From NCBI GenBank assembly GCA_050084985.1, contig JBITNC010000001.1, positions 82,956,001 to 83,020,000 on the forward strand: a DNA stretch of 64,000 nucleotides. Reading direction: 5' to 3'. The stretch comes from Nageia nagi (lineage: Eukaryota > Plantae > Pinophyta). Under the pieces are notes generated by a model. The model was not told where the DNA came from. It made no database searches and was given only the letters and a program-made list of their open reading frames with translations. Both the position numbers and the translations under genes were made by a program. This document shows, one piece after another, positions 3,050-64,000 of this stretch (positions are counted from its first letter, which is position 1; each line of letters starts with the position of its first letter).

Positions 3050-4628
3050 TTTACATACTTGGGAAGATTTTTCTACCCAAATACAGTTTGTAGAGATAGA
3101 GACAAAAAGAGGCACATTTGGTTTAGCAATTTTCATGTTGTTGGTATCATACAAATAGTGTTGGATGCCATCAACAACATTCAATTTGACTCTATTTCTA
3201 ATTCTATTGCAAGGATCATGCTTGTATCAATGATTATTGGTAAAATAATGACATAATTTATTGAAAATACACCATACTAATTCAACGTATTGGTTTTGAA
3301 GTAGGTAGAGGATTAATGAAGACCCCTACTTGTTCATTATTAAGATGTATAGGTCCTACTTGCTTAGTTAGCTTAGCATCCATCTTGATAGCACCCTTGT
3401 CAATGAAATCCTATATAATATGCTTTAGAGACCTACAATTGTGTGTTTGATGTCCAGGTACCCTATGATAATTACCAAATTCTTCATAGTAAAAATGCTT
3501 AGGCACACCATTAGGCAACTTGGGCTCAATAATAGGAGGCAACTCAATAAGTTCTTCATCCAAGAAAATATTAAGAATATTATCAATAGTATCGATCAAA
3601 GTAAACTATCATCTAGGTTTAGGGGTAGTTTTGTATTTATGAGTAACATTGTTTGCTTCAATCCTACTTGTATTTTTAGGGATTGATTTCTGACAGTGAG
3701 TGTTATCATTGTTCTTCATAGTATACAATTTTTTGATACATGGCTTTTTCTTGATAACTATGTCTATCATATCTCCTAGTGACATATCATGGTTAGAGAT
3801 GAGGAATAGTTTATATATAGGAAAGTGAACATTTGCAAAAGCATCATTTAGATCTTGTTCAATCATAGGGATTCTATTAGCCATTCATTTCCATACTTTT
3901 ACAAATTCCTTGAGAGATTGATTAGGTAATTGCCTAATTTTGCACAAATCCTTAAAATAGATTTTCTTAGCAATATTATATCTAAATTTTTGTAGGAATA
4001 ATGAATTAAATGTTCATACCTATCAATGCTATTTTTAGGAAGTTGAAAATACCATTTGAGAGCATAATCTTTTAGACTATGAGAGAATAATTTAGCTAAC
4101 AAGTCTCTATCATGTATAGATTCAATACCTTCTTCTTGGAACTTCCTAACATGCATCTTAGGATCTTGCATACCATCAAATTTAGTAAATTTGACACTCT
4201 TTTTCCTAGGAATGTTCTTAGGAAGAATTTTATTAGTTAGAGGCCTTTTGAGACAAGACAAGAAATCATCTTCATCAACTAAGATATTTTAAGGTGCTAA
4301 ATTGCCAATATTGGTTGAGTTCAATTTTGGGGATGGTGGTGTGGTTTGAGGATGATTATGAGGTGGGATATGAGGTGTACTATGAGGTTGTCTATGAGGT
4401 TTTATCTTGTGTATTTTTAAGTTTAGCCTCCTTCAAGGTAATAAATGGACCTATGCGGTTAACCCTCTCATGCTCTAACTTGTTCAAAATTTTAGCTAGT
4501 ATTTTTAACTATTGTTGCAGAGGTTCTTTGTACCAATTAGTATTATCTTGAAGTTCAAGAAGGATAGTAGTTTTAATATGATGTACTTATAATTTCCAAT
4601 TGGGTTGTAATTTGTAAGTCTCATTAAT
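3050..4628 (-). pseudogene. Ty3 gag remnant (capsid + CHHC-type zinc knuckle), 5'-deleted
   Basis: KFDGMQDPKMHVRKF..LFSHSLKDYALKWYFQLP and GNYHRVPGHQTHNC. Joined directly to the PBS by a ~0.9-kb deletion relative to element C. No protease or RT follows. Confidence 0.85.
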
Positions 4629-4644
4629 CATGTTAGGTTCACCA
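4629..4644 (-). promoter_or_regulatory. Primer binding site, tRNA-Trp
   Basis: CATGTTAGGTTCACCA is a CpG-decayed copy of the plant tRNA-Trp 3' end CACGTCGGGTTCACCA, 3 nt from the LTR. Confidence 0.8.
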
Positions 4645-4647
4645 AAA

Positions 4648-5346
4648 TGTAGACCCAAAATAATACAATTAATTATTTATGGGGGTTAATTAATGCACTT
4701 TTGGTCTACTTTATTTTATTGATATATATCTAAAATATGGTAAATATGTTTAACTGGCATACATGTTCATTTTATCCTAATTACATATTCAATCAATTAA
4801 CAACATCATACATCAAAAACAAATATGCATTCATACATTAACATGCCATTAGCAATGTAAATGAGGTACATTGCTAATGGCATGGAATAAGTAAAATTAG
4901 AAGTGTGATAAGAAATATAAGATGTTTGAATGATCAATTAATCATATAATAAATATGAAATAGTAATAAGAAATTATGTTTGTTTAATTATAGACTTGAT
5001 ATTTGTAAGGGTCTTCCTTGAGACCATGTCGTTCTTCTTCATTTGTCTTTTGGTCTTGCTATGGCTTCTATAATATCCTATAGCTTGGTTATGATCTTTT
5101 ATCTAATCTTCAATTGATAGGGCCTACCACCTTCAGATCCTATGGATTCCCATCCTTTCTTTGGTTGTTTTTTATGTATTTATATAGCAACACTTGTACT
5201 ATAAGATTTGACCCGTAGGTCATGATATAATGGTCCATTACATTAAATACATTACTTTGGGTATTTTTAACTCTTTTTTACATAATAAATCATTGAGGCT
5301 CTAAAATGAATTGTTTAATAAAATAATTTATTTTTAGGTGTCTACA
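4648..5346 (-). repeat. LTR L1 (shared 5' LTR of A and 3' LTR of B)
   Basis: TGTAGACCC...GTGTCTACA termini; PBS on the left, PPT on the right; homologous to 8917-9533, 9545-10250 and 19802-20092. Confidence 0.9.
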
Positions 5347-5875
5347 TTTTCTCCTATTTGGATGTGTGATTGAAGCAATGAAATTACATGTTCGAAGAAT
5401 AAGTGTAGAAGAAATATTTTTGAGAATTTTGAAATCTTTGTTTGCATTGCCCCTTATTGTTGTTGTTGTTGATGATGATGAGGGTCTCTTGCTATCCCCT
5501 TTTGAATTGGATGCCCTAGGAAAGATCCTTGAATGATGCAATGAATGCAAAATATAATGAAGAGTCTCTCTATAGGAATGATGCTATGAAGGTGATGGAA
5601 ATTACTATGCTATTAGGTAGCTGTATAGTTCCATATCCAATGTTGGAGATGGAAGATGTTTTTTTTCCCCTTGTACTACATCAACCATGAATCTAGTTAT
5701 TCCTTTGATTATGATGCCCAAGAACCATTTTTTCTTATGTATATGCCTTGAAATAGAGAGGATATACTTTGAATAAGATGGAATGGTGATGAAGTGGATG
5801 TTGGTGGTGGTGTAGGGAATAATGTACACACTACTGATGGCATGACATTCTTTGTATTTTGTTTTTCTCTTTAGG
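5347..5875 (+). pseudogene. Unknown antisense ORF in element 3'UTR, copy 1
   Basis: DDDEGLLLSPFELDALGKILE...YEGDGNYYAIR*LYSSISNVGDGRC...IRWNGDEVDVGGG; frame conserved with 10251-10856 apart from two 1-nt indels. Confidence 0.55.
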
Positions 5876-5934
5876 ATGTAGAAACCTGCAATGAAGTATT
5901 AGTCATAAAAATGGGGTGTATGTACAATGAATTT

Positions 5935-6360
5935 CATCTTCCATTGATGATATGTCAATGTTAACAATCTACTTATAGTTGCATTTCCAATTTATCTTTT
6001 AAGTGAGTGAACTCTCACTAGCCATATTAATGGCCATCTACGATCATATGTTTTATGTCTATGATCTGAAAAAATTATGCTTTGAATTGGTTCAAAGAAA
6101 AAACTATATGGATACACATCAAGTTACATCATCCATTGGAGATGATCCAATGTCAACATCTTACTCATGGCTACATTACCAATTTATCTTTTAAGTAATT
6201 GAACTCTCACTAACCATGTCATAGGCCATTAATGATCATACATTTTATGTCTATGATTTGAAGACATTATGCTTTGAATTGGTTCATAGAAAAAATCATG
6301 TGGATACATAGCAAAATGCATAATCCATTAGAGATGATACAATGTCAACATCTTGCTCAC
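5935..6360. repeat. ~192-bp tandem repeat (about 2.3 units) in element 3'UTR
   Basis: GAACTCTCACTA at 6009 and 6201; same unit at 10845-11370 and, reverse-complemented, at 50866-51215. Confidence 0.9.
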
Positions 6361-7049
6361 CAACCATGAACTAGGTATGAACTAGCAATATTTGACCATA
6401 TATTCAATTTATCTATTCAATGATGATATAACTCAAGAGAGAGAATCTACTCAATTAGAATTGAAAATAATAATTCAGATATTCAATACAATGCAATATT
6501 TTATAGACAATACTATGATGCTATATTATACTAGATTTTCAAGGATATAATGGCATTAAATTTCATTAGTAAAACATGCATTTTATTTGAAAAAGCAATC
6601 ATAAGAATAGCATATGCAATGTTCACTTTTTATACTAGATAATTAGAGAAAATATAATGGTCTTAACTCATCAATGATAATTTTGCAATGAAGAGCATAA
6701 ATAATAGTAAAACATGTGAGATGAGATACCTTACTTTTACTTATCTTTATACCCATGTATGGGCAATTTTTTGCACTATGCAATTATGAATTATGAATTT
6801 TGGCCTTTTGATTTTTAATATTTAGTTTCCATCATGTCCCTAGCTAAAATTGAAATTGCCCGTAGTTGAAATTGAGTTTCCACCAACTAAGGCTATATCC
6901 ACTTTTTGTTGATTTTATATGTATATATATTTTTTAATGAAATGTGGCTAATATGAGATGCAATGACTACACCCATGATATGCAACCTACATGAAATGCA
7001 CCTTATATGATATGCATCATATATGATATGAAAAATTTAAAAACTATAA

Positions 7050-8369
7050 TACATTAGGGGGTGGTGGAACCTCCATTAGTTTAGCACATTTTGCTAAGAA
7101 AAATAGATTTTCTTTGCTTAGATTATCCTCTGCATTTTCTATACCTTGGGCTACTACTCTCTCAAGAAGATTAATAAATTCAATTTGTACCTCTGGAGGT
7201 AATGTATTGTGTTGTTGTAAATGATTATTAAGGAGTAAAATCTTGAATAGATACTTGTCAAAAGGTCAATCTTTCTATTTTATATATTCTTATAACTGAA
7301 ACTCAATTGAATCTAGCTGAACTTAAATTTTTCCTAAGTTTTCTTATCTAGCTAGATGTGCAAAATAAGAACCAGTACTTCCATTATTATTTTCACATCA
7401 TTAGTGATCTTCATGCAGTATGGCACATTGCTGATGGTATGCTTCCTCATCATATTTGTTTTGAAATTTCACAATTTAATTTTCAATCCCTAAATTTGAA
7501 GCATGCTGAGGGAGCTAATATTTACCTTATGAAATCATGTCTAAAATTATAAGTTTCAAATCGTGCAAAGAATCTGTAGCATGATCCTTTCATTGATGAT
7601 AAATGTAATAAGCATCCTCATATTCCATTGGATTATCACTATCTTGTGTGCTTCTTTCTAAAAATATTAATAAACCTCTTTTCATTAGATCCCTTATAAT
7701 TAGCCTTTGTTGATGTCCACTAAGTATCTCAAAGTTGGGGGCCTCTTGATTAGGTGGTAGGGAACAATTGTGGGCATCTTGTGTTTTCAAATTTTCTTAA
7801 GATGTTACTCTTTGTCAAAATTATTTTGGTTTTGGTTGTGGTTGAGAAGATATTTGATTTTGTTTTTTTTTTTGCATATTTTTATTCTCAAACTTTTGCA
7901 TACAATATTGTATAGCATATGGATCTAACAATTTATCTAATTCTTTCCTTAGAGATGCATGATATTTTTCTTTTAATTCAAGATCATTATAAATTCCAAT
8001 CATCAAAGAAGGATTAACTAACATATGTGCTTTCATTTTTTAAAATTGATCTTTAAGTGTTAATTTTTCAAATGCAATATCATTCACTTAAAACTTATCC
8101 ATAGCATCCAAATTTAAATGTGCATCACAATCAAATTTAGCCATATAATCATCATCAATAACATTATCATGCACTTGATTTTCTATAACATTTGGCATAT
8201 CATCATTTGCAAAATTCAAGCATGAATTTGATAAACTTAATTCATCAAAAGATTTCCTATTATGCATAACATCCATAATTTTATCCATTTATTGTTTAGG
8301 ATGAGGTGCAAATAAATCACTTATCACATTCAAAAATTGAAACAAACTAGTTTTAAATGCCCTATCCAT
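7050..8369 (-). pseudogene. Decayed ~440-codon extra ORF (Ogre ORF1-like position) with zinc-knuckle-like segments
   Basis: ORF-track pieces 8088-8288, 7821-8036 and 7590-7790 continue as YIYHQ*KDHATDSLHDLK..I.DMI..GK (gag NC-like) and YHQQCAILHEDH**C. Confidence 0.55.
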
Positions 8370-8916
8370 TAAAGAATGTAAGAAGATGGAAACAAAACAT
8401 TTTTATATGAAAATTTTTATAAATATTAATAAAAATGCATGCAAAATGCTAAAAGTATTCTCCAAAAGTTCCCTACTATGATGACCAAAGGGGTTTAGCA
8501 AGTTTTTAGCATAAAACAAGTCACCAAATAGTTACAAAATGCCTTCAAAATGTATGATTTTTCAAGGTGACGTTTTCTACAAAAATAATTTCAACATCAC
8601 TCAAAATATGCAAATTTAGACCTATAAAAATTAGAAAAACTTCCCAATTATATTTATCTATTGTTTAGAAAATGTTTTCTAATGCTAGATCTCACCAAAT
8701 TTAAGAAAATGACCTTCAAAACTAGGGTTTTTTAGAGTGATATTTTTCAAGAAAATAATTTTATTTGAAGTAATAAAAGTTTCCAAATTGAAGAAAAGTT
8801 AATTTAACCAAAAAATAAAACAAAACCAAGGGTTTATAATGCAACACTCCTAAAAAAAGTTGACACCCTAAAATAAAAATTCTAGGGTTTGTAAGAATAG
8901 TCAAGGTTCACCAATA

Positions 8917-9533
8917 CGTAGATCCAAAATAATGCATGTAATTATTAATGGGGATTAATTAATGCACTATTATGACTACTTAGTTTTATTGATATATATC
9001 AGGAATATAGAAATAATAATTAAAGGGCATACATGTTAATTTTATCCTAATTACATGTTCAGTAAATTAATGATATCATACACTAAAAACAAATATGCAT
9101 TCATACAATTGCACACTACTGGTGGCCTAAATGAGGCACATCAATAACAACATGGAATAAGTAAAATTACAACTGCAATAAAAGAATACGAAGATGAATG
9201 AATGAAAGATATGCATATAAGATATATTTCAAAAAAAATGTTTGCATATAACAAAGTTATATTACATTTACTAAAGTCTCTCTTTGATCCTCCTTTTCAT
9301 TCTCCTATTCGTCCATCCCTAACCTCCTTCGAAGATGATCCTCTTTTGGTTACTTTTGATGTCTTTATATAGCAACACTTATATTATAAGATTTGACCCC
9401 TAGGTCATAATATAATGGTCCATTACATGAATTACATAGCTTTGGGTATTGTTAATCCCTTTTTACATAATTCATCATTGAAGCTCTAAAATAAATTATT
9501 TAATAAATAATAATCTATTTTTAGGTGTCTATG
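8917..9533 (-). repeat. LTR L2 (variant, 617 bp)
   Basis: Ends match L1 and L3; the middle (9180-9350) differs. Confidence 0.85.
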
Positions 9534-26717: not shown

Positions 26718-27863
26718 TACTATGAAATTCATGTACTAAACAATGTAGAAGAAATGGTCATTCACTATTTGATACTTATAATAATAAGTAAAGCACATAT
26801 AACAACATATCACATATGCTCAAATAAATATAACAAAGGAAATTACCTTGAAATATTATAACCAAACATCATAAAATATTACATAAAATCTTAATACAAC
26901 ATTCGATATCTTCTTTGATTACAATTGTAGTAGATTACCCAAATAATGTGATAACCTCTATAAAAAATACTTCTACATCACCTACACTACTTGAGAGCTG
27001 GGTGCAAGATGAACTTGATCATTCTTCTATTGAATATTTCCTCAAAGTCCATATGATATATGCTTTATAAATAGTGGAGAAAAATACAAGGAAAAAATTG
27101 AACAAACTCAGAAAAATCCTAGACTAGATACCAAACAATTTAGCTAGCTTGACATATTGGTAAAAGATCTAGATCATTGCTTACTCCTCCTTCATATAGA
27201 TATTGCTGAGAAAATAATGATGAATATAAAGAACTACTTTGATTCCATTTATTACATTGACAAGTTATCTTGAATTAGTTTGATTTTTTTTACTATGAAA
27301 TTCATGTACTGAACAATGTAGAAGAAATGGTCATTCACTATTTGATACTTATAATAATAAGTAAAGCACATATAACAACATATCACATATGCTCAAATAA
27401 ATATAACAAAGGAAATTGCCTTGAAATATTATAACCAAACATCATAAAATATTACATAAAATCTTAATACAACATTCGATATCTTCTTTGATTACAATTG
27501 TAGTAGATTACCCAAATAATGTGATAACCTCTATAAAAAATACTTCTACATCACCTACACTACTTGAGAGCTGGGTGCAAGATGAACTTGATCATTCTTC
27601 TATTGAATATTTCCTAAAAGTCCTTATGATATATGCTTTATAAATAGTGGAGAAAAATACAAGGAAAAAATTGAACAAACTCAGAAAAATCCTAGACTAG
27701 ATACCAAACAATTTAGCTAGCTTGACATATTGGTAAAAGATCTAGATCATTGGTTACTCCTCCTTCATATAGATATTGCTGAGAAAATAATGATGAATAT
27801 AAAGAACTACTTTGATTCCATTTATTACATTGACAAGTTATCTTGAATTAGTTTGATTTTTTT
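26718..27863. repeat. 573-bp tandem duplication, ~99% identical
   Basis: Units start at 26718 and 27291; five mismatches seen by eye. Confidence 0.95.
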
Positions 27864-28829
27864 TAAAGTAGTGGGAGTCGAGAAGATTAATCTGGGTAGA
27901 AACATATGTGATTTTTCTCAAATATCTCTTATTATTAGATGCCAATTATCATTCAAAATCATTCTTATTATAAATATACTACATGTATCAAATAATATGC
28001 ACTTTTATTAATAACTAACTTAATTACCCACTAATTTCATGTCTATCCTATATGAAAAGTATTTACCCAATGATTAACAATACCATCTAACATAAAGCAA
28101 CTTTACCTGACAAAAAAATAATGCTATTTGATAGAAACAAGTCTTACATGACAAATATTAATGTTATTAGATGGTAGAAAGACTTATAAAATAGTGTTGA
28201 ATTTTATCTGACATATATCAACCTTAATTGATGAGTTAAAGTCCTATTCGATGGCATGTATTCTTACCCAATAGCAAATGAACTTATCTAATAAAGATAA
28301 ACCTTATTTGATGAGTGTTAGTATTAATTGATGAGAGCTTAACCAACATCATTTACAAACTTCTAAGGATAAAATATTTCACCTTATTATTTGATCATTA
28401 ATGGGAAAAATATTTTTGGGTAAAGAAAACAAGATGAGTATGATCTTTTTTCATAAGGCTCATCTTATTAGCTTCCCTCTATACTTTGAGAATATCTACT
28501 TTATTTTATTTGTAACAAATAACTTTTAATTCTAAGTTTGATTGATTGATTTATGCATGAATTGAAGTACTTAATCTCTCAAAATTCTTACTTGATATAA
28601 AAAATCTTTTTCTAATATGAAAGGAGTGTATCCAATGATGTAACTACTTATCTAACCAATGAAACTTTTATCTAATACTTTTAACTCTTATTTGATACTT
28701 TAGAAACTATTCCATCCCATGATTGGATTATCTAACTTAATTTTACTTATTTGGATGCTCTAAAGTTTTTGTAGTATATAGCTAATATAAAAACCTTTTT
28801 GATGCTTCAAAAATAAGAAAAAATAGATC

Positions 28830-38715: not shown

Positions 38716-41700
38716 GATGCCACCTCATCTTAATTCATAACGACTGATGACTCTAAGAGACAAAAGTCCGTTTTGGTGCTCTTTAGATGAATTTATGTAG
38801 CGTTTAATGAACTGATTTTATAATTTGAAACCCATTTGATAGTCATTGCAGGCGAGTTCAGGTTTGATCATCTTGAATGTCGACGCAAATTTTCCGAGTA
38901 GCGTCAATCTCCTTTGTTAACTGCTTTCTGTCTCCTATTCAACATAATTATACATTGCAGGAACTGTATTAGGGCTTATGGGAGGATGAAGTAATGCTTA
39001 CACAATATAGTATAGTAAGCTAATAACTAATTTTTAAAAAAATTTATAAAGAAATAGAAAATAAAAATGTTATAATTCCTATTTGTGTTTAATTTGGTTT
39101 TAAAAAAATAAAATTAATTAGAGTTAAAGCATCTTATAGTTAAATTTGAATTTTTATTATTTATATCTTCATTATTGATTATTTAAATATTATTTAGATA
39201 TTTGATATAATATTATATAATTAGTATTAATAAAAATATAATAAATTATAAAATTGTAAATGAAAATCAAAATAATATTTAGATATTTTGGTTCATTTAA
39301 TACTTATAGAAGTTATTCAATATTCATTTATATTTTTCAATAAATTTTATTCATTAAATGTTATAGCTATAATTAAGTATATTTGTGTTAATTTTTTTCT
39401 TTTCTTTTATATTTATTATCTTTTCTATACTTTTAATATAGTATTTGGTGGTCTTTGGATATCAAAGATATCTTATTTTAATTATATGGTACTACTAGTT
39501 CAAGATTAATCATGAACTTAAAATAAATAAAATTGTAAGATCAAATGAAAGTTTGAAGGAGTAATCATTGTTATATGCCATTCCAAGGTCATGCATTATC
39601 ATATACAAAGGAGGTTGAATTTATAGGTATTGGGTATTGTATATGGTTATATATATATGCACATATGATCAACATGAAGTGTTAGATTTAACAACAAAGT
39701 GGTATATTTATTACGAGTTAGGATATTTATGATTTAGATACCTTAGTAATTATGCTTTGATATTTTTTGTTTTATTTTTTCATTAATGAAGTTTATTTCC
39801 CTATGCCATAATTATACTCATATTATTAAAGATCTATTGGGTAAATAAAGAGTTTAATTTTTATTTAAATAAAATCTCTAGATCCTATTTTTAAAATCAA
39901 TAATCCCTTTTCAAGATCTTTTGGAGGAATTTTATCCTTTTTAATTATTATTTTTTAATTATATGGTAAAGGTAAAGAATATTAACATCTACAAGAGACC
40001 AACCGGTCTATGGGACGAACAATTGTAATAGGCTATTACACAACATGTATGTCTCATAGTGAGAATCAAACACGAGATGCAAATCATAACAAGATCAACA
40101 CATGAATAACTCAACCAATAATCAAGACATACATAATAATCATTTCCCTAGGGCTAATCCTTCTTCATTGATAGCATGTAAATATATGCCATAGTATAAG
40201 CTTTCCTTTGAATGATAATATTCTAATAATCATGCAAGATAAAGTTACTTAAACTATGTAATACAAGCACACACATAGAAAGATAAAGAAATTTTCCTAT
40301 GGATCCTTCTCCATTGATAACATCATAAATTTATCCTAATGATAATGGTCAAATAATTAAAATATTTAAAACAAGCATGATAAATTCATAGCCATGATAA
40401 CATTTTTTTAATGCAAAGCATGTGAAAATGGATTTATATTTATAATGAATAATAGAAAAATATATCATATTAAATACACTTCAAAGATTCTATTATAGAA
40501 CACACATCTCTTGCATAATCTCTCTCTATAAACAAATCATTAAGTAAAAAGTTTTCCTTTTCTAAACATAAATATGTTGAAGTTAAAAGAACATTAATAT
40601 AGAGAAAGAATACATAACCTTTTATGTAAAAAGTAATTTTCCTCCATATTACTTACATAAACTATTATAACTAAAATAATAATAATTAGGGTTATTTATA
40701 GAATATTCAATTTAACCAATTAATAATGAAATAATAGAAAATCGATGATATAAAAGATGATAATGACCTAATTGACCTTAGCCTATAAAACTAGAGTTAC
40801 TAAAGATACAAACTTGTACTTTACCTGTGATGATGAATGAAGATGATATCTAATTGAAAAGGGATAAACAATGAGCATATTTGAAGAATGGAGCTATGAA
40901 TCCAACCTCAACCCAACACTGATGCTAAGAACCCAATGGTGCTGCCCGATTACTATTCTAGAATACCACACCCTTTTGCTCGATATCATTGTATCACCTC
41001 TATGCACAAGATATCACTCATGAATAAATGAAATATTACAAGAATGTAGAGCTCAAAGTATAACAAAAGCCAAAAGTGATAAGTTACATTAAAAAATATA
41101 GATCAAGAATGATACAAGTATATTACCACCTATCAAGGATTTAGGATTATGTCATGTCACGTCATACCTTTGATCATTCACAACCCTTCCACTTTTATAG
41201 GTAATAGGTCTAGTACTAAGCCTTCTCCTTAGGCTTATTGTGAGCTCAAGATGATATGTTATCATAAAACATAAAGGTAGATGAGAGTGAACATTGATAA
41301 GAGGATTTATTTAATAAATTAAATAAATTATTTTGAATACCTAAAAGGGTATTTTAATTAAATTAAAATTCTTTTTAGGTGTTAATAGATGCCCCACTTT
41401 GAATATGGTTTAATTCTTTTAGGATAAAATATAATCAAAGCATAAATACAAAGTATAACAAGAAAATAAAGAAAGTACTCCTTGAAAAGTTGTCTCACAG
41501 TGGCAACTTTGAATACCCCAATTTTTTGTTTATATTATACCCCCTATTTGACTTGGTTTCAACATAATGGATCTCTCATCATAGGAGCAATCCAAGGCAA
41601 AGATAAAGGGACCTAAAAAGATCTTAAATAAAAAATATTTTTACATAATATATCTCAAATATAGATATTAAACATCATGATATAGAAAGTATGCAAGTGA

Positions 41701-44513: not shown

Positions 44514-47500
44514 ATGGATCAAGCTTCATCCATGTCATGCTTATCTGAGTGTGAGGCATCAATACCGTAATGGATCAAGATTTACCTAATATGATATTGA
44601 ACCTAACTAAGGTGATCATAACCTTGACTCAAAATTCAGCTTAATTTATTCTAAATCTATAGGAAATAATAACCAATAATCAAAAGGTTACACCTAAATT
44701 ATAAAATTGGAAAAAAGTAGATCTCAGAATAGTAATGAAGACTATGATGGTGTGTTCACTACATCCTTATTAACATATATCCATATTTATCCCTTACCAC
44801 AATATATGAAGGAACCCAAATTTGAGATGTTCAATGGTGAGCAAGACCCAAAGCATCATCTTATTGGATTTTAGGAGGAGTGCTTGTTGAAATTAAGATT
44901 TGAGAAGAAATTGATGATGAAATTCTTCCCAATAAGTTTGAAAGGTGAAACTAGTCAATGGTTCTATAATCTACTTGAAGGATCTATTGATTCATTCCAA
45001 TCATTGGTAAAAACATTTATGAATCAGTACAAGCATAATGTTAAAGGATAAAGTACAATTACAGAGTTGTGTGTAGTGCACCAAGGAAATTATCAAATGT
45101 TAGAGAAGTATATCCCAAGGCTTAAAAAGGTATAGCAAACCATTCATATTCATTTGGATGAAAGAGAAATTCATGGTATTTTTTCTAAATCTTTGCTTTT
45201 AGTTCTAAAGCAACATGCTCTTGATTATACTAAATTAGGTTTTGAAGTCATGACTAGAAAAGCAATTTTGAAAGAAAAGGTATTGATTGAATTATGAACA
45301 CTAAAATAGGCAAGTACATTATGGAATAAAGAAAATAAAAAATTATATATGAAAAAAGAAGAAAAGAATGTTAATATGGATGATAAATTGACTCTTACAT
45401 GATCTAATACAACAAGGAGCTACACATTTACCTTCTTGATTCCTCCCAACCTTATTTTATAGGAATTGATTAAGAAAGGCTTATTAAGGCCATTGGAAAG
45501 AATAGAAAAAGATGAAAATATCTTTATGGAGAACTTATATTCTTATTATTCATATCATCAAATAAAAGGATATGTAATGAATAGCTATAAAACCCTTGAA
45601 GATTATATACTAGATCTGATTGCTCTAGGAAAATATGAAAGCAATGAAAATATTCCAAATTCATATCATACCGTGAATGCCATAATAGTGGCTAAGGAGA
45701 TTTTTGTTTCATTTAGAAGAGGATATCCAATATCCAATCCACCTACACAACAAAATTAAAACTAGGATAAAAATGAACATGTAAGTCTCCCACTAAATCC
45801 AAGAGCTTATAGCATGATTGAATAGTTAAAAATCACTCCTACTTAGCTTGTTTGATTTCATTAGTACATATAAGATATGTAGAGAATTATTATATAATTT
45901 TTTCAAAAAAGGAATGATTCCTAACAATATTTTTACTACTATGTTTTCTAAAAACCTTTAGTCCATTAAAGATTATGATGATATCTCATTCTTTAGATTT
46001 GAAAAACTTGGCAAGGAACTAATAGCTAAATGCTTAGCACTTTTTATTACCCTTATGATACATGATTTAGAAATTAAAAATAGCATTGATAGATCTTAGT
46101 TCAACTATTAATGTTTGTTCCCAAAAATTCTTGCAACAATTAAAAAGTAATGATGTAACTATCCCACCCCTAAAAGAGCCAACTTTTAGAATAAGGGCAT
46201 ATGATAATTCAACTAAAAAACCATTTGGTTTAGTTACACTTGAGATCACATTAGGTGTTAGGAGTATCAAAATAAGTTTTCATGTTATGAATAAAAAGGT
46301 TTCATATAACCTTCTCTTAGGAAGACCTTGGTTACGTGATATGGATGTAGTACCTTCTACACTTCATGGTTGTTTAAAATTTGAGTATGAAGGAAAAATA
46401 CATATAGTAATAAAGGATCTAGAACCATATGCATTATGTAATCTAGCAGATCTCTATATTGAAGGATTGGGTTTACATTTTCCTAAGTTTCAAATAGTTC
46501 CATTAGAGGTAGAGTCAATATTGATAAAAGTAGAAAAAGAGGTAAAGGTTGTAGAATCAAGCATGCAAATGTATAAAATTGAGAATTTTGATCCATTAGC
46601 TTCTATAAAAGACTTGGTTTGTCTAAAAATTATAAGTGAATCAGGGTGTGCATGCCATGTTGAAGGTGATATAGGTCACATATGCTATGAAAATGAAGGA
46701 AAAGTGGGTGGTTCTTATTCAACATCATCTTTATCTCCAAACCCTATTCAATAAAATGATAAAATGGAAAATAAGAATGCATGCAATTATTTTTCATTTT
46801 CCTTTTTACATAAATACATGGTTGAAAATTGTAAATATAAAGGGGAAGGATTAGGAAAATCAGAATAAGGAATGCCTTCTTTTCCTATTAATTTAGGAGC
46901 TCAAAAAGAGAAGAAGTAATTAGGTAGTGATTATAATATAAAATAAACTACAAGGCCTATTAATTTTATTTTAGAATGCAATATGATAGAATTATATGAT
47001 GAAATTAATAATAAAAAAATAGATAGATGATACTATACCACTTGAGTTTGATTGCTTTACTAATGATAACATATTAGAATACATGGGGGCACATTCAGAA
47101 TTTCCCAAATTAAATTCAAAAAGATAATCAAATGATTTCTTTAGTCAATATGGATATTTTGGATAAGAGATAGATTTTAATGAATTGTTTTAGGTACAAC
47201 AAGCTAATGAAGATGATATTAATAGATAAGAAATACTAGGATTGGAAGAGTTACCTTCATTATTGCAAAGAAAAGATGAATCTACATTTATTTATAGAAG
47301 AGTTGGCAAAGGTTAACATTGTTACAAGTGATAAATACAAGTCAATAAAAATTGGAGCTACTCTTTCAATACCATCCCAAGAAAGGTACTAAAATAAGTT
47401 CATTGAATGTAATAATTTTTTTTGCTTAGTCTTACACTAATATGCTTGGTTTAGAAACATCTTTTTTCATACATAGATTACCATTTAAAAAGATAAAAAA

Positions 47501-51215: not shown

Positions 51216-53889
51216 ATAAATGATAAAATATTTATAATAAGGTATTTTCTAATCTAGTTTTCATCTAGAAGTAAAAAACAAAATTCAAAAGATTCAAAGA
51301 TTCCATGTTGTGAGAGTAGATATGATATGTTATCAACACCATTTTTTATGCCTGAAAAGAGTTAGAATACTAAAATGATCCTCTTATGTATCCAAATATG
51401 GAAATTAATATATCAAAAATAATAAATAAAGAAGTAGTTCAAACCATACTAAAGTATAACAAGGGGCAAACTATTAAGTTATTTTGTCTTGGCTGCACTA
51501 TTAAAGAAGACTATTCTTGGGGTAACCAAACCAAAGGGGAAGAGAAGAAGCCTAATTGAGAAGATCATATGGATAAGTAAAGAGTTCAAATTTCTCAAAA
51601 TATTTCTTATACTATTCTTCTTTGGATATGTAACTCAATGTATTTCATTACACCTCTAAATAAGGACAAAATGTAGACACTTAAAAATGAATTATTATTA
51701 ATAATTCATTTTTATAGCATCTAGATATATATGCTATAAATAAGGGGATTAAAATATACCAAATATGTTGTATTTAATGTAATAGGAATAGTAAATAATG
51801 TAAGTGCTATCAAATTCCCATAAAGGCACCATTGACTATGTAATGTATGATGATACCCAAATAAGGAGAAGATCCATATGTAGCTATAAAAGCATATCAA
51901 AGATAAAGATTGAGATATGAGTAGATGATCACCACCTAGAGTAAGGGAAATTGACATCATTCATATTATGATTATGATTTAAACAATTATGTGAAGGTGA
52001 AGTATATAATTCAAACTATCAGATTTGATAAGGTACATTAATTTACTATTACAATAACTGGTATATTTTGCATGCATACTACAGTATTTGGATTGTAAGG
52101 AAATAGTGCCTTGTTTATTGCATTGTATATTATTTACTATCTATAGTTACAAAATACCTTTTCCATTTTATTGATATCATTTTTCACCTTTTATGCACAA
52201 GATATCACTCATGAATGGATGAAAGCATGTAGGAATGCATAACTCATAGTATAACAAAAGTCAAAAATGATAGGTAGCATTAAAAAACACCAATCAAGAA
52301 TGACCCAAGTATATTTTCACCTATCAAGGATTAAATATTATATTATTTCATCTCATATATTTTATCATGCACAACCCCTCCACCTTTATAGGTAACAAGT
52401 CTAGTGCTAAGGATCCTCCTTAAGCTTATTATGATGTCGAACTGACTTGTTATCATAAAACATAAATGTAGATGAGAGTGCATATTGATAAGAGATTTTA
52501 TTTAATAAATTAAATAAATTATTTTGAATACCTAAAAGGGTATTTTAATTGAATTAAAATACCTTTTTAGGTGTTAACATAAACTTTCCCTTTTATTTAA
52601 CCCATAAACTTGTGCATCATAAATTTGTTGGACTTTTCTCATGGTATTTATCACCTCTTTTTTTATTTCATTTACAAGGATGAGAATATTATGTAATAAG
52701 TAATACTTAATTTATATTTTATCCCTTATATATCAAAATAATTTTATATAAATAATAATCATAGTGGTATTATATGTACTTAGCACATAAACTTAAATGT
52801 CATATTCAAATAACTAATATCAAGTGAAGGTTGAAAGAATCAAATTCCATAATCAATTGAATAGATTTTTCATATTTATTTTCTTTTTCAACCATTATAT
52901 AATATATTCATCATAAATAATTAATTATACTTTATCTTTAAATTTAATACTTGTAGATTTTATTTCCCTAAATAATAGTCTGGATGTAATACCATCAACT
53001 TAGAATGTTATATTTAGACATTGAGTCATTAATGATGATATGCAAAGATAATAGTATTGCTACATAGATAAATAGGAGAAAATATCATAAGGTTTGTAAA
53101 TGTTTAGTTTATTAAAATGTTTAAATGTTATAATATTTCTCAAATAATTCCTATACTTGTAACATTTAGAATTTTTTTTATAAATGCTTATTTTGGCAAT
53201 ATTATAATGCTACAATTTAAATTTTTGCAAATTGATATATTCAAAAGAAAATGCATGTATTAAACCAAAAATCTTACAAAAGATCTCAAAATACCTCACA
53301 ATGTATGGTATTTCTTTTTTAATTCCATGCTACAAATCATCCACCAATATACATGGAAATACACTCATATATAGGAAAAATACCTTTCAAATATAACTTC
53401 TTTTAGGTGTTATTTCAATCATTCATCTATAACAAATTAATTTTTACTAATAATATATTCCTTTCAAGAAAGTGCTTTTTGAAAACAAAATGAGTCTAAA
53501 ATCTTCCTTAAATCCTTATTATCTTCTATTAATATTGTTCAAAGGCACCATACTAGCATGTCCTTATCCTGCATTTTCCATAATGCACCTCCATGCAATC
53601 GACTAGGAAGGCATTCAACTACTATCAATTTCATCTAATTTACTTGTAATTTATCTCCATTCCCACATTTTTCATCATATAAAATTAAGGAAGATCCTAT
53701 CCTCTAGCCAAATTCCCATATATATTTTTGACATATATCAAAAATAATAGTAGGCATATATCAGTTCCACCACTGCTACCTTCGCCCGATTGCATCGCTT
53801 AACTTTTGATATATTTGGGCCTATATAAAAACTAATATGATAGGAATATGTTTAAGTATGCAACTCAATTACCTTCCAATGATACTACT

Positions 53890-54590
53890 CCACCCAAATA
53901 TATCATGGGCATATAGTGAAGCTACATAATGGGTGTATATCAAGAGCCTCTAGAAAAAAATTCATTGGTTTGATGAGATATATGATGGACATATATTAGA
54001 ACTATATCATGGATGTATAATGAGAAATTAAAAAAATTTAGATTTTTTTGAATAGATATATCATGAGCATATCTTAAATATATCATGGGAGTATAGCAAG
54101 AAACATAAAACACCTAGAAATGTTGAAACTAGACATATGATGGGTGTATATCACTTAACATAACATGGGTGTATAACGATAATTAAGAAATTTTTTTTTT
54201 CAATTTTTGAACAAGATATATTATAGATGTATATAGAATATACATGGGGCATATATCGAGAACTAAGAATAGAAATATATTATATTTTTTAATGAGATAT
54301 ATTACAAGTGTATAACAGTTATAAGAGGGGCATATAGAGAGAACTAAGAATGGACAATTTTTAAATTTTTGAATGCAGATATATTATAGGCATATAGAGG
54401 TTATAATATGGGAGTATAACAAGAAGTAAATTTTTTTAAAATTTTTGAATGATATATATTGTAGGTGTATACCAATTATATTATGGGTGTATAGAAAAAA
54501 TTTTAGTTTTAAAACAAGCATATAGTGCACCTATCATGGGTGTATAACAATATATATAAATATAAAGTTCAATTTTTGGGTGTGTATCCA
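53890..54590 (+). repeat. Array of ATATATCATGGG(CA/TG)TATA motifs
   Basis: More than 12 degenerate copies; GGGCAT and GGGTGT variants imply ancestral GGGCGT. Confidence 0.85.
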
Positions 54591-55569: not shown

Positions 55570-58500
55570 GAGGCATTTGCAGATTCTATTATGGGAGAAT
55601 GGATAGCCACCAAGAAGGGTGATAAAATTCAATATTTTTACTTTTTTAGGAATTGTGTTTTGATAAATGGTGTTTAAAAGGGTTAAAGGAAGAGGTTAGA
55701 CCAACATAGGATCTGATATCATGAAGGTGCACCACCAATTCCTCCTTTGCTATGAGGTAGGAGGCCAGCCAATGGTATTAAAAAATCATCATCCTATAAC
55801 CAAAATAAATATATAGCAGATAGGTAGGATATAAATAAGATGATGATGATATAATTTAAAAGTAAGCATTATAGAGTGTCAGGTAGTATTTTTTTTTTCA
55901 TTATAATGTCAAAGATAGAAAAATATTGCCAAAACTAGCCTTTGCTAAAATGTAAATAAAATTAGAAGAGTATAATTCTAAGGATAGAAAGAAAAAGAGA
56001 AAATTGGCTCATTATAAATATGAATTTAGTAAGGCGCATGTGTAATTTATCATATAATGGAAGGTAATTAAACAACATTTCAATAAGAACTTAAAAACTA
56101 AAATTCAAAAAATATGTTGTTATTAGATATTTGTATAAATATACAATATTATTCATTATTGATATCACAAAATTATTGATAGGATTCACCACATATTGAA
56201 GGGTCTTCACATGTGATTGACTTTTTGTCTATAGAAAATGCTCAATGTGTTGATGATGAGGTGAATGTTGGTGATAAGGTGAATGTACATAATGAGGTTA
56301 ATTTTGATAATGAGGTGAATGCTCAGGTAACTCCATTTTCTTGTAATTATTTGTAGCTAAATTTTATATTTTCATATTCAATTGAGGCTCTATAAAGCAT
56401 CATTGTTTGACATGTAGGTAATACATGATAATATTTTTCCATTTGCTACCAAAAAGGGTCAAAAGGTGCATATCCTTGACCCTCTTGGTAATATAGTGGG
56501 GTTTGGAAATATGCACAATGATGATCTTGCTAGCACATACCACAGTAGCACCATTGGTGAAGGGCATATTTCAATAAAGGTGACAATAATTAATTTCATA
56601 GGTTATAAGCTACCCATACCCAATTGGGTGCTATAAAATTGGGAGAATCTTTTTGGGGCTTTATGTTATGGGACACTAACTTAATTTATATCAAACATTT
56701 ATGCAATTAATGATATTTATGTTTCATAATAATTATGTTTTTTAATTAACTATTGAATTCATTTTGCATACTAGAAAATGTTGGTCCACAACCACAAGAA
56801 TGTGTAAATAATGGATCATTTACCACTAGAAAGGGTCAAAAGGTGAATCTCCTTGATCCTCTTAGTAATATAGTGGGGTTTGGCAATGTGCATAATGATG
56901 ATCATGCTGACACATACCATAGTAGCACTATCGAAGAGGGGAACATTTCCATAGAGGTGACATCATGTAATTTTAGTGATTGCATGCTACCCATACCCAA
57001 TGGGGATGCTACTACTTAGGGAGAATATATTTAGGGCTTTGTGTTATAGGAAACTAAATCACTACAACTTGATTTCCAACCTCCTATTATAACCCAACAA
57101 GTATAATTATTCCTTATTTTATATCAAATGTTTACTATTCATTTTGTAACAAGTATATTTTTAAATTAACTTTTGATTTCATCATTTTTGTTTATGATAT
57201 AGTATAACATGCATAAATTAATGGAGCAAAAGGAGTATGTAAATGAAGGATAAGGTTGTGAAGAGCTAAGGTTACAAGAACAACATGTTGAATATGCTGC
57301 AATGTGGACCCAACACATTACACAATGCACACAAGATGCCACAAATGGCACACAATAAGTATTCTTCATTCCAAAAATAGCACAATTTAGTCAAAGTTGA
57401 AAAAACTAGTTTGAAAGTAGTGTTCACAAATGCATAATTTTCTTTATGATATATGATAACATGCATAAAGGAATGGAGCAAAATGAGGATGCAAATAAAG
57501 GAATGGAAAAGAATTAAGATATAAATGAAGGAAAATACAATGAAGAGGTAGGGTTCCTATAAAAGCATGTTGTAGATGTTGCAAAGTGGATTGAATCCAT
57601 TACATAAGAAATACAGGATGCCAAAAATGACATAATGTAGGTATTCTTCATGCTATTTGTAGGGAATATTTTCCATGTTTGTACATATTTTTTGCATACA
57701 TGTACACTAATGTAGGCCCTTTTTTGAAAACCCATGTGCATATCCTATGATCAAAGTACTCTTTGATGAATGTCCATTCCTTTCTCCACAACCCCTTATA
57801 TTTGGTGGCATATGCGTGGAGAATGTTGGTAAGGTTGCCTACAAGTATTTAGGGCCTTGTTTTGAAAATCCATGCACTAAACCTAAGAAAGGTTTGACTA
57901 AAGCCATGTAATATTGTGTTGCATTATTCATGACATCACCAAATTTAAATAATACTTCTACATGTACTTCAAATCCATGTCAAAAATTGTGCTTTCCCAT
58001 GTACCAAAAAACTTGGGTCCCATAGAACTGTAGGTTGTTAATTCTTAATTGTGTGTTCATTAGGGTAACATGTACATAGCCATGAATTACTACATGAACA
58101 TAATATTGTACATATTTTAGTCAATGATTGTGTTTGAGTTTAAGGGCATCATAATATGCTTTATCATGCATAACAACAGGATAATGAGGAATTACATGTA
58201 GAAGAAGAAGATGGCAATGTAGTGATGATGTTATGGCCACATGGAAAGATTTTTGTTTATGGAACATGAATGAGGAACTTATTTTAAAATCTTAAATATA
58301 TTTTTTCTTGATAGACCAACAAGTTGGTGGAGGGTTAGGTGCTTATTTTTTTTGTTGTGTACTCCTCATAGGTTGGTTACGTACACATCCTACTATTTTT
58401 CCTAGCCAAAAATAACTTGATGCACTAATATAAGATGCATGTTTAGAATGGAACAAGCTAAAATAGATTTCATCCTTAAAAGATAACTATCTAGATGGAC

Positions 58501-60011
58501 ATTTTGATTTAGATTTCATTATAGAGTAGAAGTTGAATTTTGTGACTATTGACTTTATATATTCCAAGTAGGGCTTACTTAAGCTAAAGGGTGCAATGTC
58601 AAAGTTCAAAATACTACAGGATAAAACTATTAATACAACATTGAATTCCATTTTAGAAACTCCTAAAATTTACATTGTTACATGGGCTGATCATTTTTTC
58701 ATTTTGATGGTTGAGGAACATGCATGTTACATTTTTGATACTCTTGGTCATAGAATAGAAGAGTCTTGTAAAGAAGGATATGTTATGAAGTTTGATGAAT
58801 ATATAGAAGCATGGGAGAAGGCAAAAGGGGAAAAAAGGAGGATGAGTACACTCTATTAAAATAGGGTAAGGATTGCTACTAAGATAACTATGCTACATTT
58901 TTAACAAAAAAATGTGTGCATGGCTAGATTGTTGACTTCAAAGCTAGGGCATTAAATAATATCAATCTAACCATGAATTTGATGGTGGAATTCAATCTCA
59001 TAAAAGTGGATGATGATGAAAATAGGTGGATATTGGCATTAATATTTTAAGTTTTTTTTACTTATGTTTTAGGAATTTAGTAACCTCAACCTAAAAATGT
59101 TGTTTTAGGCCTTCTACCATGCAAGGAATTGATGACGAAAACATACTAAAAGATAACAAAGGATTACTTAGGAAGAAACTAGGTCTTAGGTCTAGATCTG
59201 GATCTAGACCAACCATTGAGATAACTCCTCCTGCTATGAAAAGGGATGAAGGTAAGAGAGATGCTTGGTATAATTCCAAGGTTTCTCTCAAAGGGAAAAA
59301 AACCATCTATGACTTGTACCTTGCTAGAAATAAGGTAAAAAAAAGGACCAAGTCATTTCAAAAGGTGACATTTCAAACAATCATGTGTAAAATCAAACAT
59401 ATGATATTTTTTGTACTTCAAAACTATTCTGCATCTACTAGGATAATAGGTTACAACATAAATCAACAAGTATTTGTTTATGTAAATAAAAACTATATAG
59501 TAAGATTGAGTAATGTAGTTTTATTTTTTTTGAAGATTCCTAATATATAAATTTGTATGATGTTGGGTATGATTTTCTATACACTATACTTTATTTTACT
59601 TTTGATGTGGCAACTTATAGATTTTGAATTTTATGGCACATAACCCTAGGAGTAGATAGTGAAGACATTAAGGAATCGATCAAAATAAAGAGATTTAAAT
59701 ATAAATCCATTAGAATGCCCCAATACAAGTATCTACATGACAAAATGCTTATGGAGGTAGATAATTATTAGGGAAAACACTTGCCAATATTTGAAACCAT
59801 CCCACTACATGGGAATAATAGGGAGTAGTGGAAATCATGGAGGAACATATACAAAAAGTTTTACAAGCATGGCTACAACAATATGTATTTTGATGTTAAA
59901 GAGAATGCAGATGAAAAAGATCCATTCATGCATGAACTAGATGTGAGCTTATTCCTACACAATAGAAAAATATTCTTTGTTCCCACCCCATTGTCCATGT
60001 ATGATCCTTGA
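55570..60011 (+). pseudogene. Decayed multi-exon MULE cargo gene: two TNP1/DUF8039-like domains, Cys-rich segment, papain-like domain, basic C-terminus
   Basis: Duplicated KGQKV.LLDP..NIVGFG..H..TI.EG.ISI.V....LPIP...TLGE..GF.LW (56440-56680, 56818-57060). Exon 58180-59025 reads IDQQVGGGLGAY..GW..LDALI*DACLEW..GHFDLD..IYIVTWADHFFIL.VE..CYIFDTLGHRIEESCKEGYVMKFD. Confidence 0.7.
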
Positions 60012-60599
60012 TAAGACTTTGTAATTGTAATTGTGATTATATATTTGACTTTTTATATTTTGGCCATCAAAGTGTTTATAACCATAAGATTTGAGATACA
60101 ATATATATTTGATACGTATAGTTTATGGTGAATATTTGATTATGTATATGCCTATATAATTGACTATGTTTATGAAAGCCCTTTTTGTACAAATATAATT
60201 GATTGTATACAAATCGTACGTGCAATAGTTATGCTAAATTTAGAATTTGCTATATTATTTAATGTAGAATTTGCAATGATTGTGCTACATTCTTAATTAT
60301 GAATAAATCATACAAGTCATACATAATTCAAGATAAATCATACATGCAATAGTTATATTGAATTCATAACTATCAAATAATGCAATAGAAATCATATGAT
60401 AAACAACGTAAGATTAATGTAGAAATCTAGCTCCAAATCATATATAATTCAATACAAATAATATGATAAAAAACTAAAGAGTAATGTAGAAATATAGGCC
60501 CAAAACATACATAATTCAATACAAATCATATGATAAATAACTTAAAATAAATGTTGAAATCTAGGCCCAACTCATTTTATAAACAATTTAACATTGTGT

Positions 60600-61020
60600 A
60601 GGTATATCATGGGCATATATATAAATATATTATGGGTGTATATCAAGATATATTTTGAGCATATATCAAATATATGGTGGGCATATATAGAGAACATCAC
60701 TACTATTGGTTACTTTCAAAGATATCAAGATATATGTTGGATATGTATCAAATATATGATGGGCATATATAGCAAACACCATTAATGTTGCTTATTTCAA
60801 AGATATCAAGATATATGGTGGGCATATATCAAGTATATGTTGGGCATATATTAAGATATATGTTGGGTGCATATCAAATATATGGTCGACATAAATAACT
60901 AATATCACTACTATTGCTTACTTTTAAATATATATGATGTGCATATATAATGATAATATATGGATGTATATAATATGGATCTTCAAATATGTTGGGGTTC
61001 ATGAACAATGGTATATATTA
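60600..61020 (+). repeat. Second ATATAT.(A/G)TGGGCATATAT motif array
   Basis: About 12 copies, same orientation as 53890-54590. Confidence 0.85.
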
Positions 61021-62079
61021 GGGTTCATGATTAATGTTAGCTCCATCTTTTGATATGAAATTGAGTAAGTATATAAGCCAAGATCATGGTTACCAAGACT
61101 TCCATTGTAAAATAATGATCTTGGTTCCTATGCTTTTTCAATCTCAATCACACTAGGGAGATAAAGGGTACCATATCCTTTAATGACTTTGAAGTTGCTC
61201 TATGTATAGGATATTTTGAAGATTTATTACCTACTTCTATGGCTCCATTTATAATTTTTTAAATATCTTATTTCCTTTTTTGGTAGGACTTTCAAACATA
61301 CAATTCTAAGGATTCTATTTATTTTTCATGTTTCTTGTATTTAATTTAACCATGCACAAGTAGGACATTTAGACATGTAACCATGTCTTATTTATTATAG
61401 GCTTATGTGCCTCCTTTCCACATTTTTTTTATGTCTTGTTTCCTTTTCTCATAATGTCAATGATATTTTCATTCCTAAAATCATTCATGCATCTTTTACT
61501 AAGGACATTTTCTTTACTACTCTAATTTATTAGGTATAATTTTCTTAGGAAATTCTCATAGATATTATGATGCCAATAAGTTAGATACATTCATAGGACA
61601 TGCACAACTTATGAGATACACAACTCAGGATATACACAACTTAGATATTTTTTTGCCAATAACATAGATATTATGATGCCAATAACTAAGATCCATACAT
61701 AAGGACACACATAAATCAGATTAAATACAATACATTTTATAATATTGTAAATCCATATTGAGGATATAAACAACTTAATTGGTAGTTAAGGTATTCCTTC
61801 ACCATTATTTTACAAATAATATACAATGGTAATTATCAAAATTATGAAAAATATTAATGTATTTATTGTAAAGTTTAACATCGATCTTGATGCCTATGCC
61901 CAATATTCTATTTTTGACTTTCCCCTACATTAGATTGCTTAGTTATGGTCAAGAATAATAAATACCTATGTGTTGATTCAAATTTGGCATGATCATCTAC
62001 AAGAAAGAGTATGAGTAGTACTCAAATTAGATTTTTTGAAAAATGATTTCTAGGAATGAAGTTAAATTAAACCATAAAG

Positions 62080-64000
62080 TGTTTACCTTGAAATTGTGTT
62101 ATCTTAGGTTGATCACACTTTTTTAATCTTGGTAAGAATTAAGTAGGAGTTTGTTGGGTATCAACAATTAAATCACATTATTTCATCTCTTGAGTCCCAC
62201 TTTTCTTTTTACTTGAAGGACTCATGTAACTCTTTATTATTCTTTCAGACATTTCAGTTATATTAGAATCTTATGGGAATTAAAACTAGTGGTACCTAGC
62301 TTGTATATCCACAACCAAACTTGCAAAATACCTCTTACTTTTAGGAGTATCATATAATTTATCTAACAATGATTTTAACCATGAATTTCCATCATCTACA
62401 TCTAATATCTTGGGAGATGAATGATCAACCTAATATTCTTGACCTTAAGAGATGTTAACATGAGGTGAGGATGTTGGTAGGAGGAATGAGGTGTATTAGG
62501 TGCATGTATCATTGTACAGTTAGGAAAATTAATAGTTTCAATTGACATGTTAATGATTTTAAATACATGCTTGCATGTGTTACTTATATGGCCCCACTTG
62601 CAAATGCATGTGTAATAGTTCACCTTGAAGGTAATAAGATATTATTTTGACACATCTTGACTCCTTACCTAGTATGAGCCAATGACATCTTCATGAGGGA
62701 CACAATGAGAATCAAGTATCATATAAGACTTCTATATTGCACTCTCTACACTCTTTTCTTTCTTGTAATTGTTTCAAAATCTTAGTGTATTCAATTTAAC
62801 CAAATTCACATAATATTGAAAAACTAGTTCAAAAAGCATGTAAAGTAATAAATCCATTCTTCTAACACATTTTCTAGCCTTTTAATATAGAAATCTAGTT
62901 TTCAAAGTACAAGTATATGACTTTATAGCTAAATTTATTTCTTAGTTAGAATGGGAAAAATTTCTATGGCATTTCACCTACATACTTGCAACAAAAAATG
63001 TAGAATAAAAATCAAAATGCTTGAAAAAATAAAATTAATAATAAAAAATATTTAGTTTGTTATGATTTTACTTATGAATTCTATTAGCATGAAACCAATT
63101 ACCAATCAAGTAATCTATAAAATCCTTCTCATTATGGAAATTGACATAAAACCTAGATACAAATAATTTTATAGATACATCATCCTTGCATTTGTACATT
63201 ATTTCATCTAATATTGCAAACATTCTTCTTCCTACATCTTTACTTGATGCCTTCTTGTAGACATTGTTTAAACAATCCCATTTCACATGCCAAACACACA
63301 ACAAATGCCTACAACTAGACACTTTCTTGGACATGCATGCAACAACATAAATAAATTTACCAAATGAACAAGATAAAAGAACACTCATACAATTTAAAAC
63401 ATTTTTAGGTTTATGCTTATTTTGTATATTTTTTGAAATAAAATACAATTCACAAACTTGATGGCTTGGATTTTTGCAGTAGCATCATTAGTAAGAAAAA
63501 CATTCACATGCCAACTTGGTTGACATTCTAGATAATGCTATTTCAATATTTCAAGCCACTTAATTATGTCATCAATACCATTTTTGTATATGAAAACCTA
63601 ATCTATAGATAGATCACTTTGTTGGGAATCAAATGCAAGCAATGTTTAAAATTGGTATCACAATACACCAAAGTTTAGCAATGCATAAAAATTTAGATAT
63701 GGACAACATCATTAATGTAAAAATAAACAACTATGTAAAAAGTTAGCAATACTTACACCATAAAAATTTGTATTGAAGCTTGAATCCATTGAAATTATGT
63801 TATTGTGGGATAATTCCACCATCTTATCCAACATCCATTATATTTGAATAATGATAACAAATTTTTCAATTTCATGGTTAGGTTTATTATATATAAAAAA
63901 CTTTTCCCTGTTGACCCATCGGTTTGTACTAGTGGCATCATATTTAGCCTTCTACACCTTCCCCCTCATCAATCTATTATATATGTTTTGAACATCCCTC
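62080..64000 (-). pseudogene. MULE transposase (DDE + SWIM zinc finger), intron-containing, 5' part outside window
   Basis: ISMDSSFNTN; FLTNDATAKIQAI; HLLCVWHVK; FIDYLIGNW; SWIM YTCICKWGHISNTCKHV. Confidence 0.88.

Follow-up and report, generated by a model that had tools for sequence, protein, structure and literature searches.

We analyzed a 64-kb stretch of DNA (contig JBITNC010000001.1 of assembly GCA_050084985.1, positions 82,956,001 to 83,020,000 of the forward strand), referred to here as the window, with the focus on an exon at 58180-59025 that holds the decayed counterpart of the catalytic domain of plant DUC-type deubiquitinases. The exon is embedded in repetitive DNA, and a decayed transposase gene lies farther downstream. 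The features of the exon are the following.

58180-59025, plus strand: decayed exon with a complete predicted catalytic domain of a DUC-type (papain-fold) deubiquitinase and no C2 domain (tblastn, splice-like edges)
58293-58927, plus strand: span with nine in-frame stops and a frameshift near 58826-58842
58344-58346, plus strand: TAT (Tyr) in place of the catalytic Cys, which is Cys-318 in AtDUC1 (alignment of GESACTALVAVIADW with GLGAYFFCCVLLIGW)
58692-58697, plus strand: CAT TTT, the catalytic His and the aromatic gatekeeper Phe, both kept (ADHFF opposite NDHFF)
58737-58739, plus strand: GAT, the catalytic Asp, kept (FDTLG; tblastn alignment)

The DUC family was named by Lachmayer et al., who showed K63-specific deubiquitinase activity (bioRxiv 10.64898/2025.12.04.692294). 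The Arabidopsis members are AtDUC1 (At2g25460), AtDUC2 (At3g11760) and AtDUC3 (At5g04860), and the solved structure of AtDUC1 has a papain fold with Cys-318 together with His-441 plus Asp-456 as the triad and Phe-442 as gatekeeper. The same preprint states that every land-plant DUC carries a C2 domain, and transposons go unmentioned in it. An earlier interpretation of the locus made from the letters alone, here called the sequence-only reading, had regarded the host domain as uncharacterized; the description of the DUC class has overtaken that statement.

Homology of the exon to plant DUC proteins

Read in frame 3 from 58182, the exon yields the peptide string quoted in the sequence-only reading, and its tail (GKDCY..ATFLT..LMVEF) follows in frame 2. 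Its edges are splice-like, with AG at 58178-58179 and GT at 59026-59027; translation and edges thus stand as first given.

Two kinds of search connect the exon to the DUC class. First, the full-length host DUCs P0002, P0003 and P0005, which carry IDQRSERAAGESAC..HFDLE..YIVSWNDHFF..IDTLGERL..LQIEF, each gave one colinear alignment when compared to the 64-kb window by tblastn, at 58206-58850 in frame 3, with E values of 1e-24 to 1e-26 and ∼30% identity. Second, a stop-free piece of 95 residues (58572-58856) matched 144 of 1.8 billion proteins in a phmmer search, with an E value of 6e-14 for plant NT-C2 proteins. The closest match was P0001, a database fragment of 106 residues that is 60% identical to the piece (E 5e-28). 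The others are plant proteins of 550 to 950 residues that align near their C-termini (E ∼1e-13) and have the Pfam NT-C2 domain at the N-terminus together with the motifs named in the sequence-only reading. Motifs common to the exon and the plant DUCs are IDQ, HFDL, W-x-DHFF, IDTLG-R and a C-terminal CK-Y/FL..EF. By these alignments, the exon is homologous, far beyond chance, to the C-terminal catalytic domain of plant DUC (NT-C2) proteins, and the likeness to NT-C2 proteins that had been proposed motif by motif is borne out.

No C2 domain was found anywhere in the 64-kb window, where the tblastn search with full-length DUCs matched 58.2-58.9 kb only, and Pfam found no NT-C2 domain in the open reading frames (ORFs) upstream of the exon. 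Pfam also assigned no family to the stop-free pieces of the exon or to neighboring ORFs; a Pfam model for DUC does not exist, and the pieces are of small size. In a word-indexed protein search, the 95-residue piece and P0001 found nothing besides P0001, and scans of metagenome and prokaryote-genome collections returned no match to the DUC lineage. Peptidase_C48 (Ulp1) had no Pfam match in any piece of the window, in agreement with the earlier statement that the domain is not Ulp1, and VTD chains of the PDB had no sequence match with the exon. A weak PDB sequence match to SseL (clan CE; E 0.41) was set aside as chance, since neither the order of the triad residues nor the structural comparison leads to it.

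Catalytic residues and decay

The nucleophile helix aligns gap-free (CTALVAVIADW versus YFFCCVLLIGW), and the Tyr lands on the Cys column; this confirms the proposal that TAT at 58344 occupies the predicted nucleophile position. The loop preceding this helix has a two-residue deletion in the window copy. Because mafft --add misaligned the N-terminal half of the domain, the tblastn alignment was used for that part. His and Asp of the triad are each invariant in the DUC alignment A1. The DUC triad with gatekeeper is therefore incomplete in the window copy: His, Phe and Asp are present, and Cys is replaced by Tyr.

In-frame stops occur in frame 3 at 58293, 58413, 58431, 58464, 58527 and 58569 and in frame 2 at 58862, 58880 and 58925, and the frameshift between the two frames falls in an A-rich run at ∼58826-58842. 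A second frameshift is probably located near 58225-58235, where ..NVVTMVTWE.. is encoded by loose contig ends of related DNA, in the same frame as the beginning of the exon. Stops and frameshift were read through, as X, only in local scripts. With nine stops and the frameshifts, the window copy is enzymatically dead; it is a pseudogene, a fossil from which no enzyme can be encoded. Each of the nine stops differs from a Gln or Trp codon by a single C>T or G>A step. The same two changes are the most frequent differences between 58000-63999 and related contigs aligned to it at a likeness of at least 80% (the 40 best-supported of 2,589 differences were listed), a pattern that fits decay of methylated DNA.

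Fold and domain setting of DUC proteins

AlphaFold was applied to a host DUC domain, that of P0020, together with 39 relatives (mean predicted local distance difference test score, pLDDT, of 85); the model represents that host domain, not the window copy itself. Against the PDB, the closest folds to this model were the VTD deubiquitinases 8ADC, 8ADD and 8ADB, with Foldseek E values of 6e-6 to 4e-4. As judged from the model and the preprint, the kinship of DUC to herpesvirus C76/VTD enzymes is at the level of the fold only. The VTDs and herpesvirus tegument deubiquitinases (C76; PDB 8ADD, 8ADC and 2J7Q; PMC9741609) have no detectable sequence similarity to the exon. Moreover, their triad has the order Cys-Asp-His and no gatekeeper, whereas that of DUC is Cys-His-Asp with a gatekeeper Phe (10.64898/2025.12.04.692294). 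The order Cys-His-Asp is shared with YopT, unlike C76/VTD. The YopT/AvrPphB cysteine proteases (C58), in turn, act as effectors of bacteria; ubiquitin is not cleaved by them, and they are without the aromatic gatekeeper residue. Of the sequence-only reading, which had proposed a papain fold resembling C76 deubiquitinases, the resemblance holds in that the nearest folds are VTDs; the triad order is not that of C76.

Among host proteins, the rule of C2 plus deubiquitinase domain has exceptions: in P0003 of Cryptomeria japonica (XP_057856916), the DUC domain is preceded by a coiled coil and a WRC domain. The DUC paralogues P0016 and P0073 of Cannabis sativa are without C2, and an MBD domain is added to the host DUC in a Protea gene model (P0019).

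A divergent lineage represented by the window copy and P0001

A tree was built from 98 DUC domains; in it, the window copy and P0001 grouped together with a support of 99, outside the well-supported host groups. The stem length of 1.82 was not used, as P0001 spans only one third of the columns. Over the 106 columns of P0001, its identity to host domains has a median of 38% and a maximum of 47%, compared with a host-host median of 53%. P0001 is less similar to the hosts than every land-plant sequence in the set, and the alga Tetraselmis alone is comparable. Overall, identity of the window lineage to hosts is ∼28-38%, as opposed to 49-53% among hosts. These comparisons indicate that the window copy and P0001 form a divergent DUC lineage that is farther from land-plant DUCs than these are from one another and, therefore, not a recent single capture of a canonical host DUC gene.

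P0001 retains 17 of the 22 near-invariant host residues in addition to His, Phe and Asp. In those near-invariant columns where P0001 and the window copy disagree, the conserved residue is usually found in P0001. This pattern is consistent with divergence under constraint, followed by decay in the window copy.

Flanking exon-like pieces, repeats and transposase

The features to the left and right of the exon are the following.

53700-54560, no strand: tandem array of ∼80-bp units to the left of the DUC gene (self-comparison)
56418-57016, plus strand: coding-like module with a tandem duplicate (copies 56440-56679 and 56817-57057, 80% identical)
59109-59334, plus strand: exon-like ORF with no stops and many Lys and Arg residues, in a phase that fits the end of the DUC exon (AG/GT edges, ORF, phase)
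60600-60970, no strand: second tandem array, with ∼80-bp units that are related to those of the first and in direct orientation; it lies between transposase and DUC gene
61871-64000, minus strand: decayed, likely Mutator-like transposase that converges on the DUC gene and runs past the window end (motif order, atlas neighbors)

The DUC exon stops two bases into a codon, and AG at 59107-59108 opens a stop-free exon of 226 nt in a compatible frame that is followed by GT; for the junction from 59025 to 59109, splice phase alone was computed. Related contigs bridge 58824-59483. Pfam gave no match for the ORF at 59109-59334, and host DUCs end soon after LQIEF, without a basic tail of this kind. The upstream module at 56418-57016 reads KKGQKVxLLDPLxNIVGFGNxHNDD..TYHSSTIxEGxISIxVT..LPIPN; it had no match in Pfam or the protein atlas, and it may be an upstream exon of the DUC gene. 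Additional coding-like pieces (..WKSWRNIYKKFYKHGYNNMYFDVKENADEKDPFMHELDVSLFLHNRKIFFVPTPLS..) without a family match were observed at 59610-60010 on the plus strand.

In four public runs, 1,400-9,500 short contigs per run, with a likeness of 80-99% (mostly 80-95%), together covered all 30 bins of 58000-63999. Because related contigs cover every bin in all four runs, the DUC exon, its flanks and the neighboring transposase gene are all high-copy repeat. The arrays at 53700-54560 and 60600-60970 share units in direct orientation and bracket the region of the DUC gene. A separate array of 67-bp units lies at 60377-60575, inside the segment 60200-60600 that is present in runs X1 and X2 and nearly gone in runs X4 and X5. 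There were no inverted repeats of note within 50-64 kb.

The transposase is a gene of its own that converges on the DUC gene and lies ∼3 kb past its end; the suggestion that the protease is fused to transposon domains is not borne out. Its pieces stand in the order typical of Mutator-like elements (MULEs), i.e., MDSSFNTNFYG, FLTNDATAKIQAI, LLCVWHV and a CxC..CxH SWIM-like finger at 62405-62641. Protein-atlas neighbors of a 138-residue ORF of the transposase are MULE clusters (PF10551; 0.91, 17 of 30 matches). Two contigs from metagenomes, L001 and L002, share 83% identity with the transposase over 61871-63791, both ending short of the DUC side, and the counterpart of the finger in L001 matches SWIM (PF04434) with an E value of 0.011, which misses the cut-off. 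A word-indexed protein search with the transposase ORF returned a single unannotated fragment of 86 residues. Based on motifs and neighbors, the transposase is likely Mutator-like, though this is not proven. The MULE setting assumed in the sequence-only reading thus has a MULE-like transposase 3 kb away on its side, by motif order, atlas neighbors and a weak SWIM match, and the Pfam results against it.

The likeness to L001 (3238) and L002 (68) stops abruptly at window position 63791, within the region of the first DDE motif. This stop could reflect an insertion or a rearrangement in one lineage, or else an intron edge there.

Discussion

We consider it probable that 58180-59025 is a dead copy of a C2-less DUC-type deubiquitinase gene that rides on a Mutator-like transposon and that was an accessory gene in intact founders. 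The DUC gene would be carried by a Mutator-like DNA transposon whose decayed transposase is the convergent gene at 61.9-64.0 kb. In the intact founders, it would have been a real accessory gene with a role like that of Ulp1 in the Kaonashi and VANDAL MULEs and of VTD and OTU in Helitrons. The C2 domain, the plasma-membrane anchor, would have been swapped for other exons, the basic tail included, and the C2-less enzyme would remove ubiquitin from targets of the transposon or on the chromatin side of the host, and not from endocytic cargo. Methylation-type C>T and G>A decay would then have turned Gln or Trp codons into stops in the window copy. The transposon may have used the DUC enzyme, e.g., for protecting its transposase or for blunting ubiquitin-dependent silencing. 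We hold it doubtful, however, that intact founders encode an active DUC-type deubiquitinase, with C2 swapped for other exons including a basic, possibly nuclear tail, that is used by the transposon.

Several observations weigh against a transposon-borne accessory gene. First, no Cys-bearing copy was seen, and protein databases contain the family only in the form of short fragments. Second, no contig or read was seen that bridges the DUC gene to the transposase, and no terminal inverted repeats or target duplication turned up that would mark the ends of an element, whose right end lies beyond the window. Third, Pfam detected a MULE domain in none of the stop-free pieces, whether from the window or from L001, and the atlas match of the transposase ORF shares few features (138 of 256). 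Fourth, in runs X4 and X5, depth is only 3-20 at 60200-60600, and the transposase bins are several-fold deeper than the DUC bins.

The alternative that survives best is that a fragment of a host DUC gene was transduplicated once, in the manner of Pack-MULEs, and was amplified as dead cargo that never served the transposon. We regard this as possible but somewhat unlikely. In line with a passive passenger, most gene pieces that plant transposons capture have no function, according to a review (PMC13317346); the window copy is dead, and no intact full-length family member was found among 5.8 or 1.8 billion proteins. Yet the domain is present as a whole (∼300 residues), with splice-like edges and a next exon in compatible phase. 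Moreover, the lineage is divergent from land-plant DUCs, and still P0001 keeps His, Phe, Asp and most of the near-invariant residues, which fits divergence under constraint.

The fourth observation above leads to a second alternative, because the drop of X4 and X5 at 60200-60600, together with the array at 60600-60970, makes two neighboring repeats possible. A DUC-bearing repeat of ∼53.7-61.0 kb, bounded by the ∼80-bp arrays, would then lie outside the MULE, with the transposase adjacent or nested. The shared units of the arrays at 53.7-54.6 and 60.6-61.0 kb and the several-fold excess of transposase bins in X4 and X5 are in line with this arrangement. On the other hand, depth in X1 and X2 varies by no more than roughly one order of magnitude across the 6 kb and is not depressed at 60200-60600, and this evenness speaks for the DUC gene and the transposase being in one element. 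We judge the arrangement in two unrelated repeats to be unlikely. Finally, an ordinary decayed host DUC paralogue, i.e., a duplicated gene or pseudogene without any transposon, is highly improbable: C2-less or re-fused DUC gene models do exist (P0003 with WRC in Cryptomeria, P0016 and P0073 in Cannabis), but the thousands of related contigs that, in four runs, cover the exon together with its flanks, the lack of a C2 domain nearby and the separate, divergent lineage stand against it.

If the DUC gene was an accessory gene of a Mutator-like transposon, its closest parallels are other transposon-borne proteases. Ulp1 protease domains are known on plant MULEs, Kaonashi and VANDAL (PMC13317346). 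As in the Kaonashi (KIU) and VANDAL elements, a host-derived protease domain for ubiquitin-like modifiers would form an accessory gene of its own within a Mutator-like element, and short-motif arrays are found in non-coding parts. There are also differences. Ulp1 (C48) of Kaonashi and VANDAL belongs to clan CE and cleaves SUMO, whereas the protease in the window differs in clan and substrate; the pieces of the window have no similarity to Ulp1 or VANC; and the carrier is a flowering plant for Kaonashi and VANDAL and probably a gymnosperm for the window copy. VTDs are reported to be absent from plants and to be Helitron-borne in animals; the carrier of the window DUC copy, by comparison, is probably a MULE. 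With respect to plant DUCs, the catalytic domain is homologous over its full length and has His, the gatekeeper Phe and Asp in common with them, but the window copy lacks the N-terminal C2 domain, has other flanking exons, a high copy number, Tyr for Cys and a broken frame.

In its description, which dates from late 2025, the DUC class is plant-specific and, in land plants, always C2-anchored. A transposase-adjacent, high-copy-repeat setting of this class has not been reported before, and a C2-less DUC in a probably Mutator-like repeat is new, because the preprint has C2 in all land-plant DUCs and no transposons. A C2-less DUC lineage in a DNA-transposon-like repeat would add to the transposon-borne proteases of the ubiquitin family (Ulp1, OTU, VTD). 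If the proposed reading is true, the fold cluster of YopT, VTD and DUC would, with the VTDs on Helitrons, be a recurrent transposon accessory module, and one would have to ask whether the transposon gene and the DUC genes of hosts go back to a common past on transposons. The window copy is only a fossil, and its value is that of one specimen of the family; the hundreds of copies would form a data set on the capture, retargeting and loss of such domains.

Other features of the window

A pair of direct repeats of 406 bp at 40982-41385 and 52173-52577, which are 83.7% identical, resembles the long terminal repeats (LTRs) of a Ty3-type element. A retropepsin-like ORF lies between them at 46086-46754, and the right LTR ends ∼1 kb before the first ∼80-bp array. 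Farther to the left, at 26718-27865, a 575-bp segment is duplicated in tandem with 99% identity.

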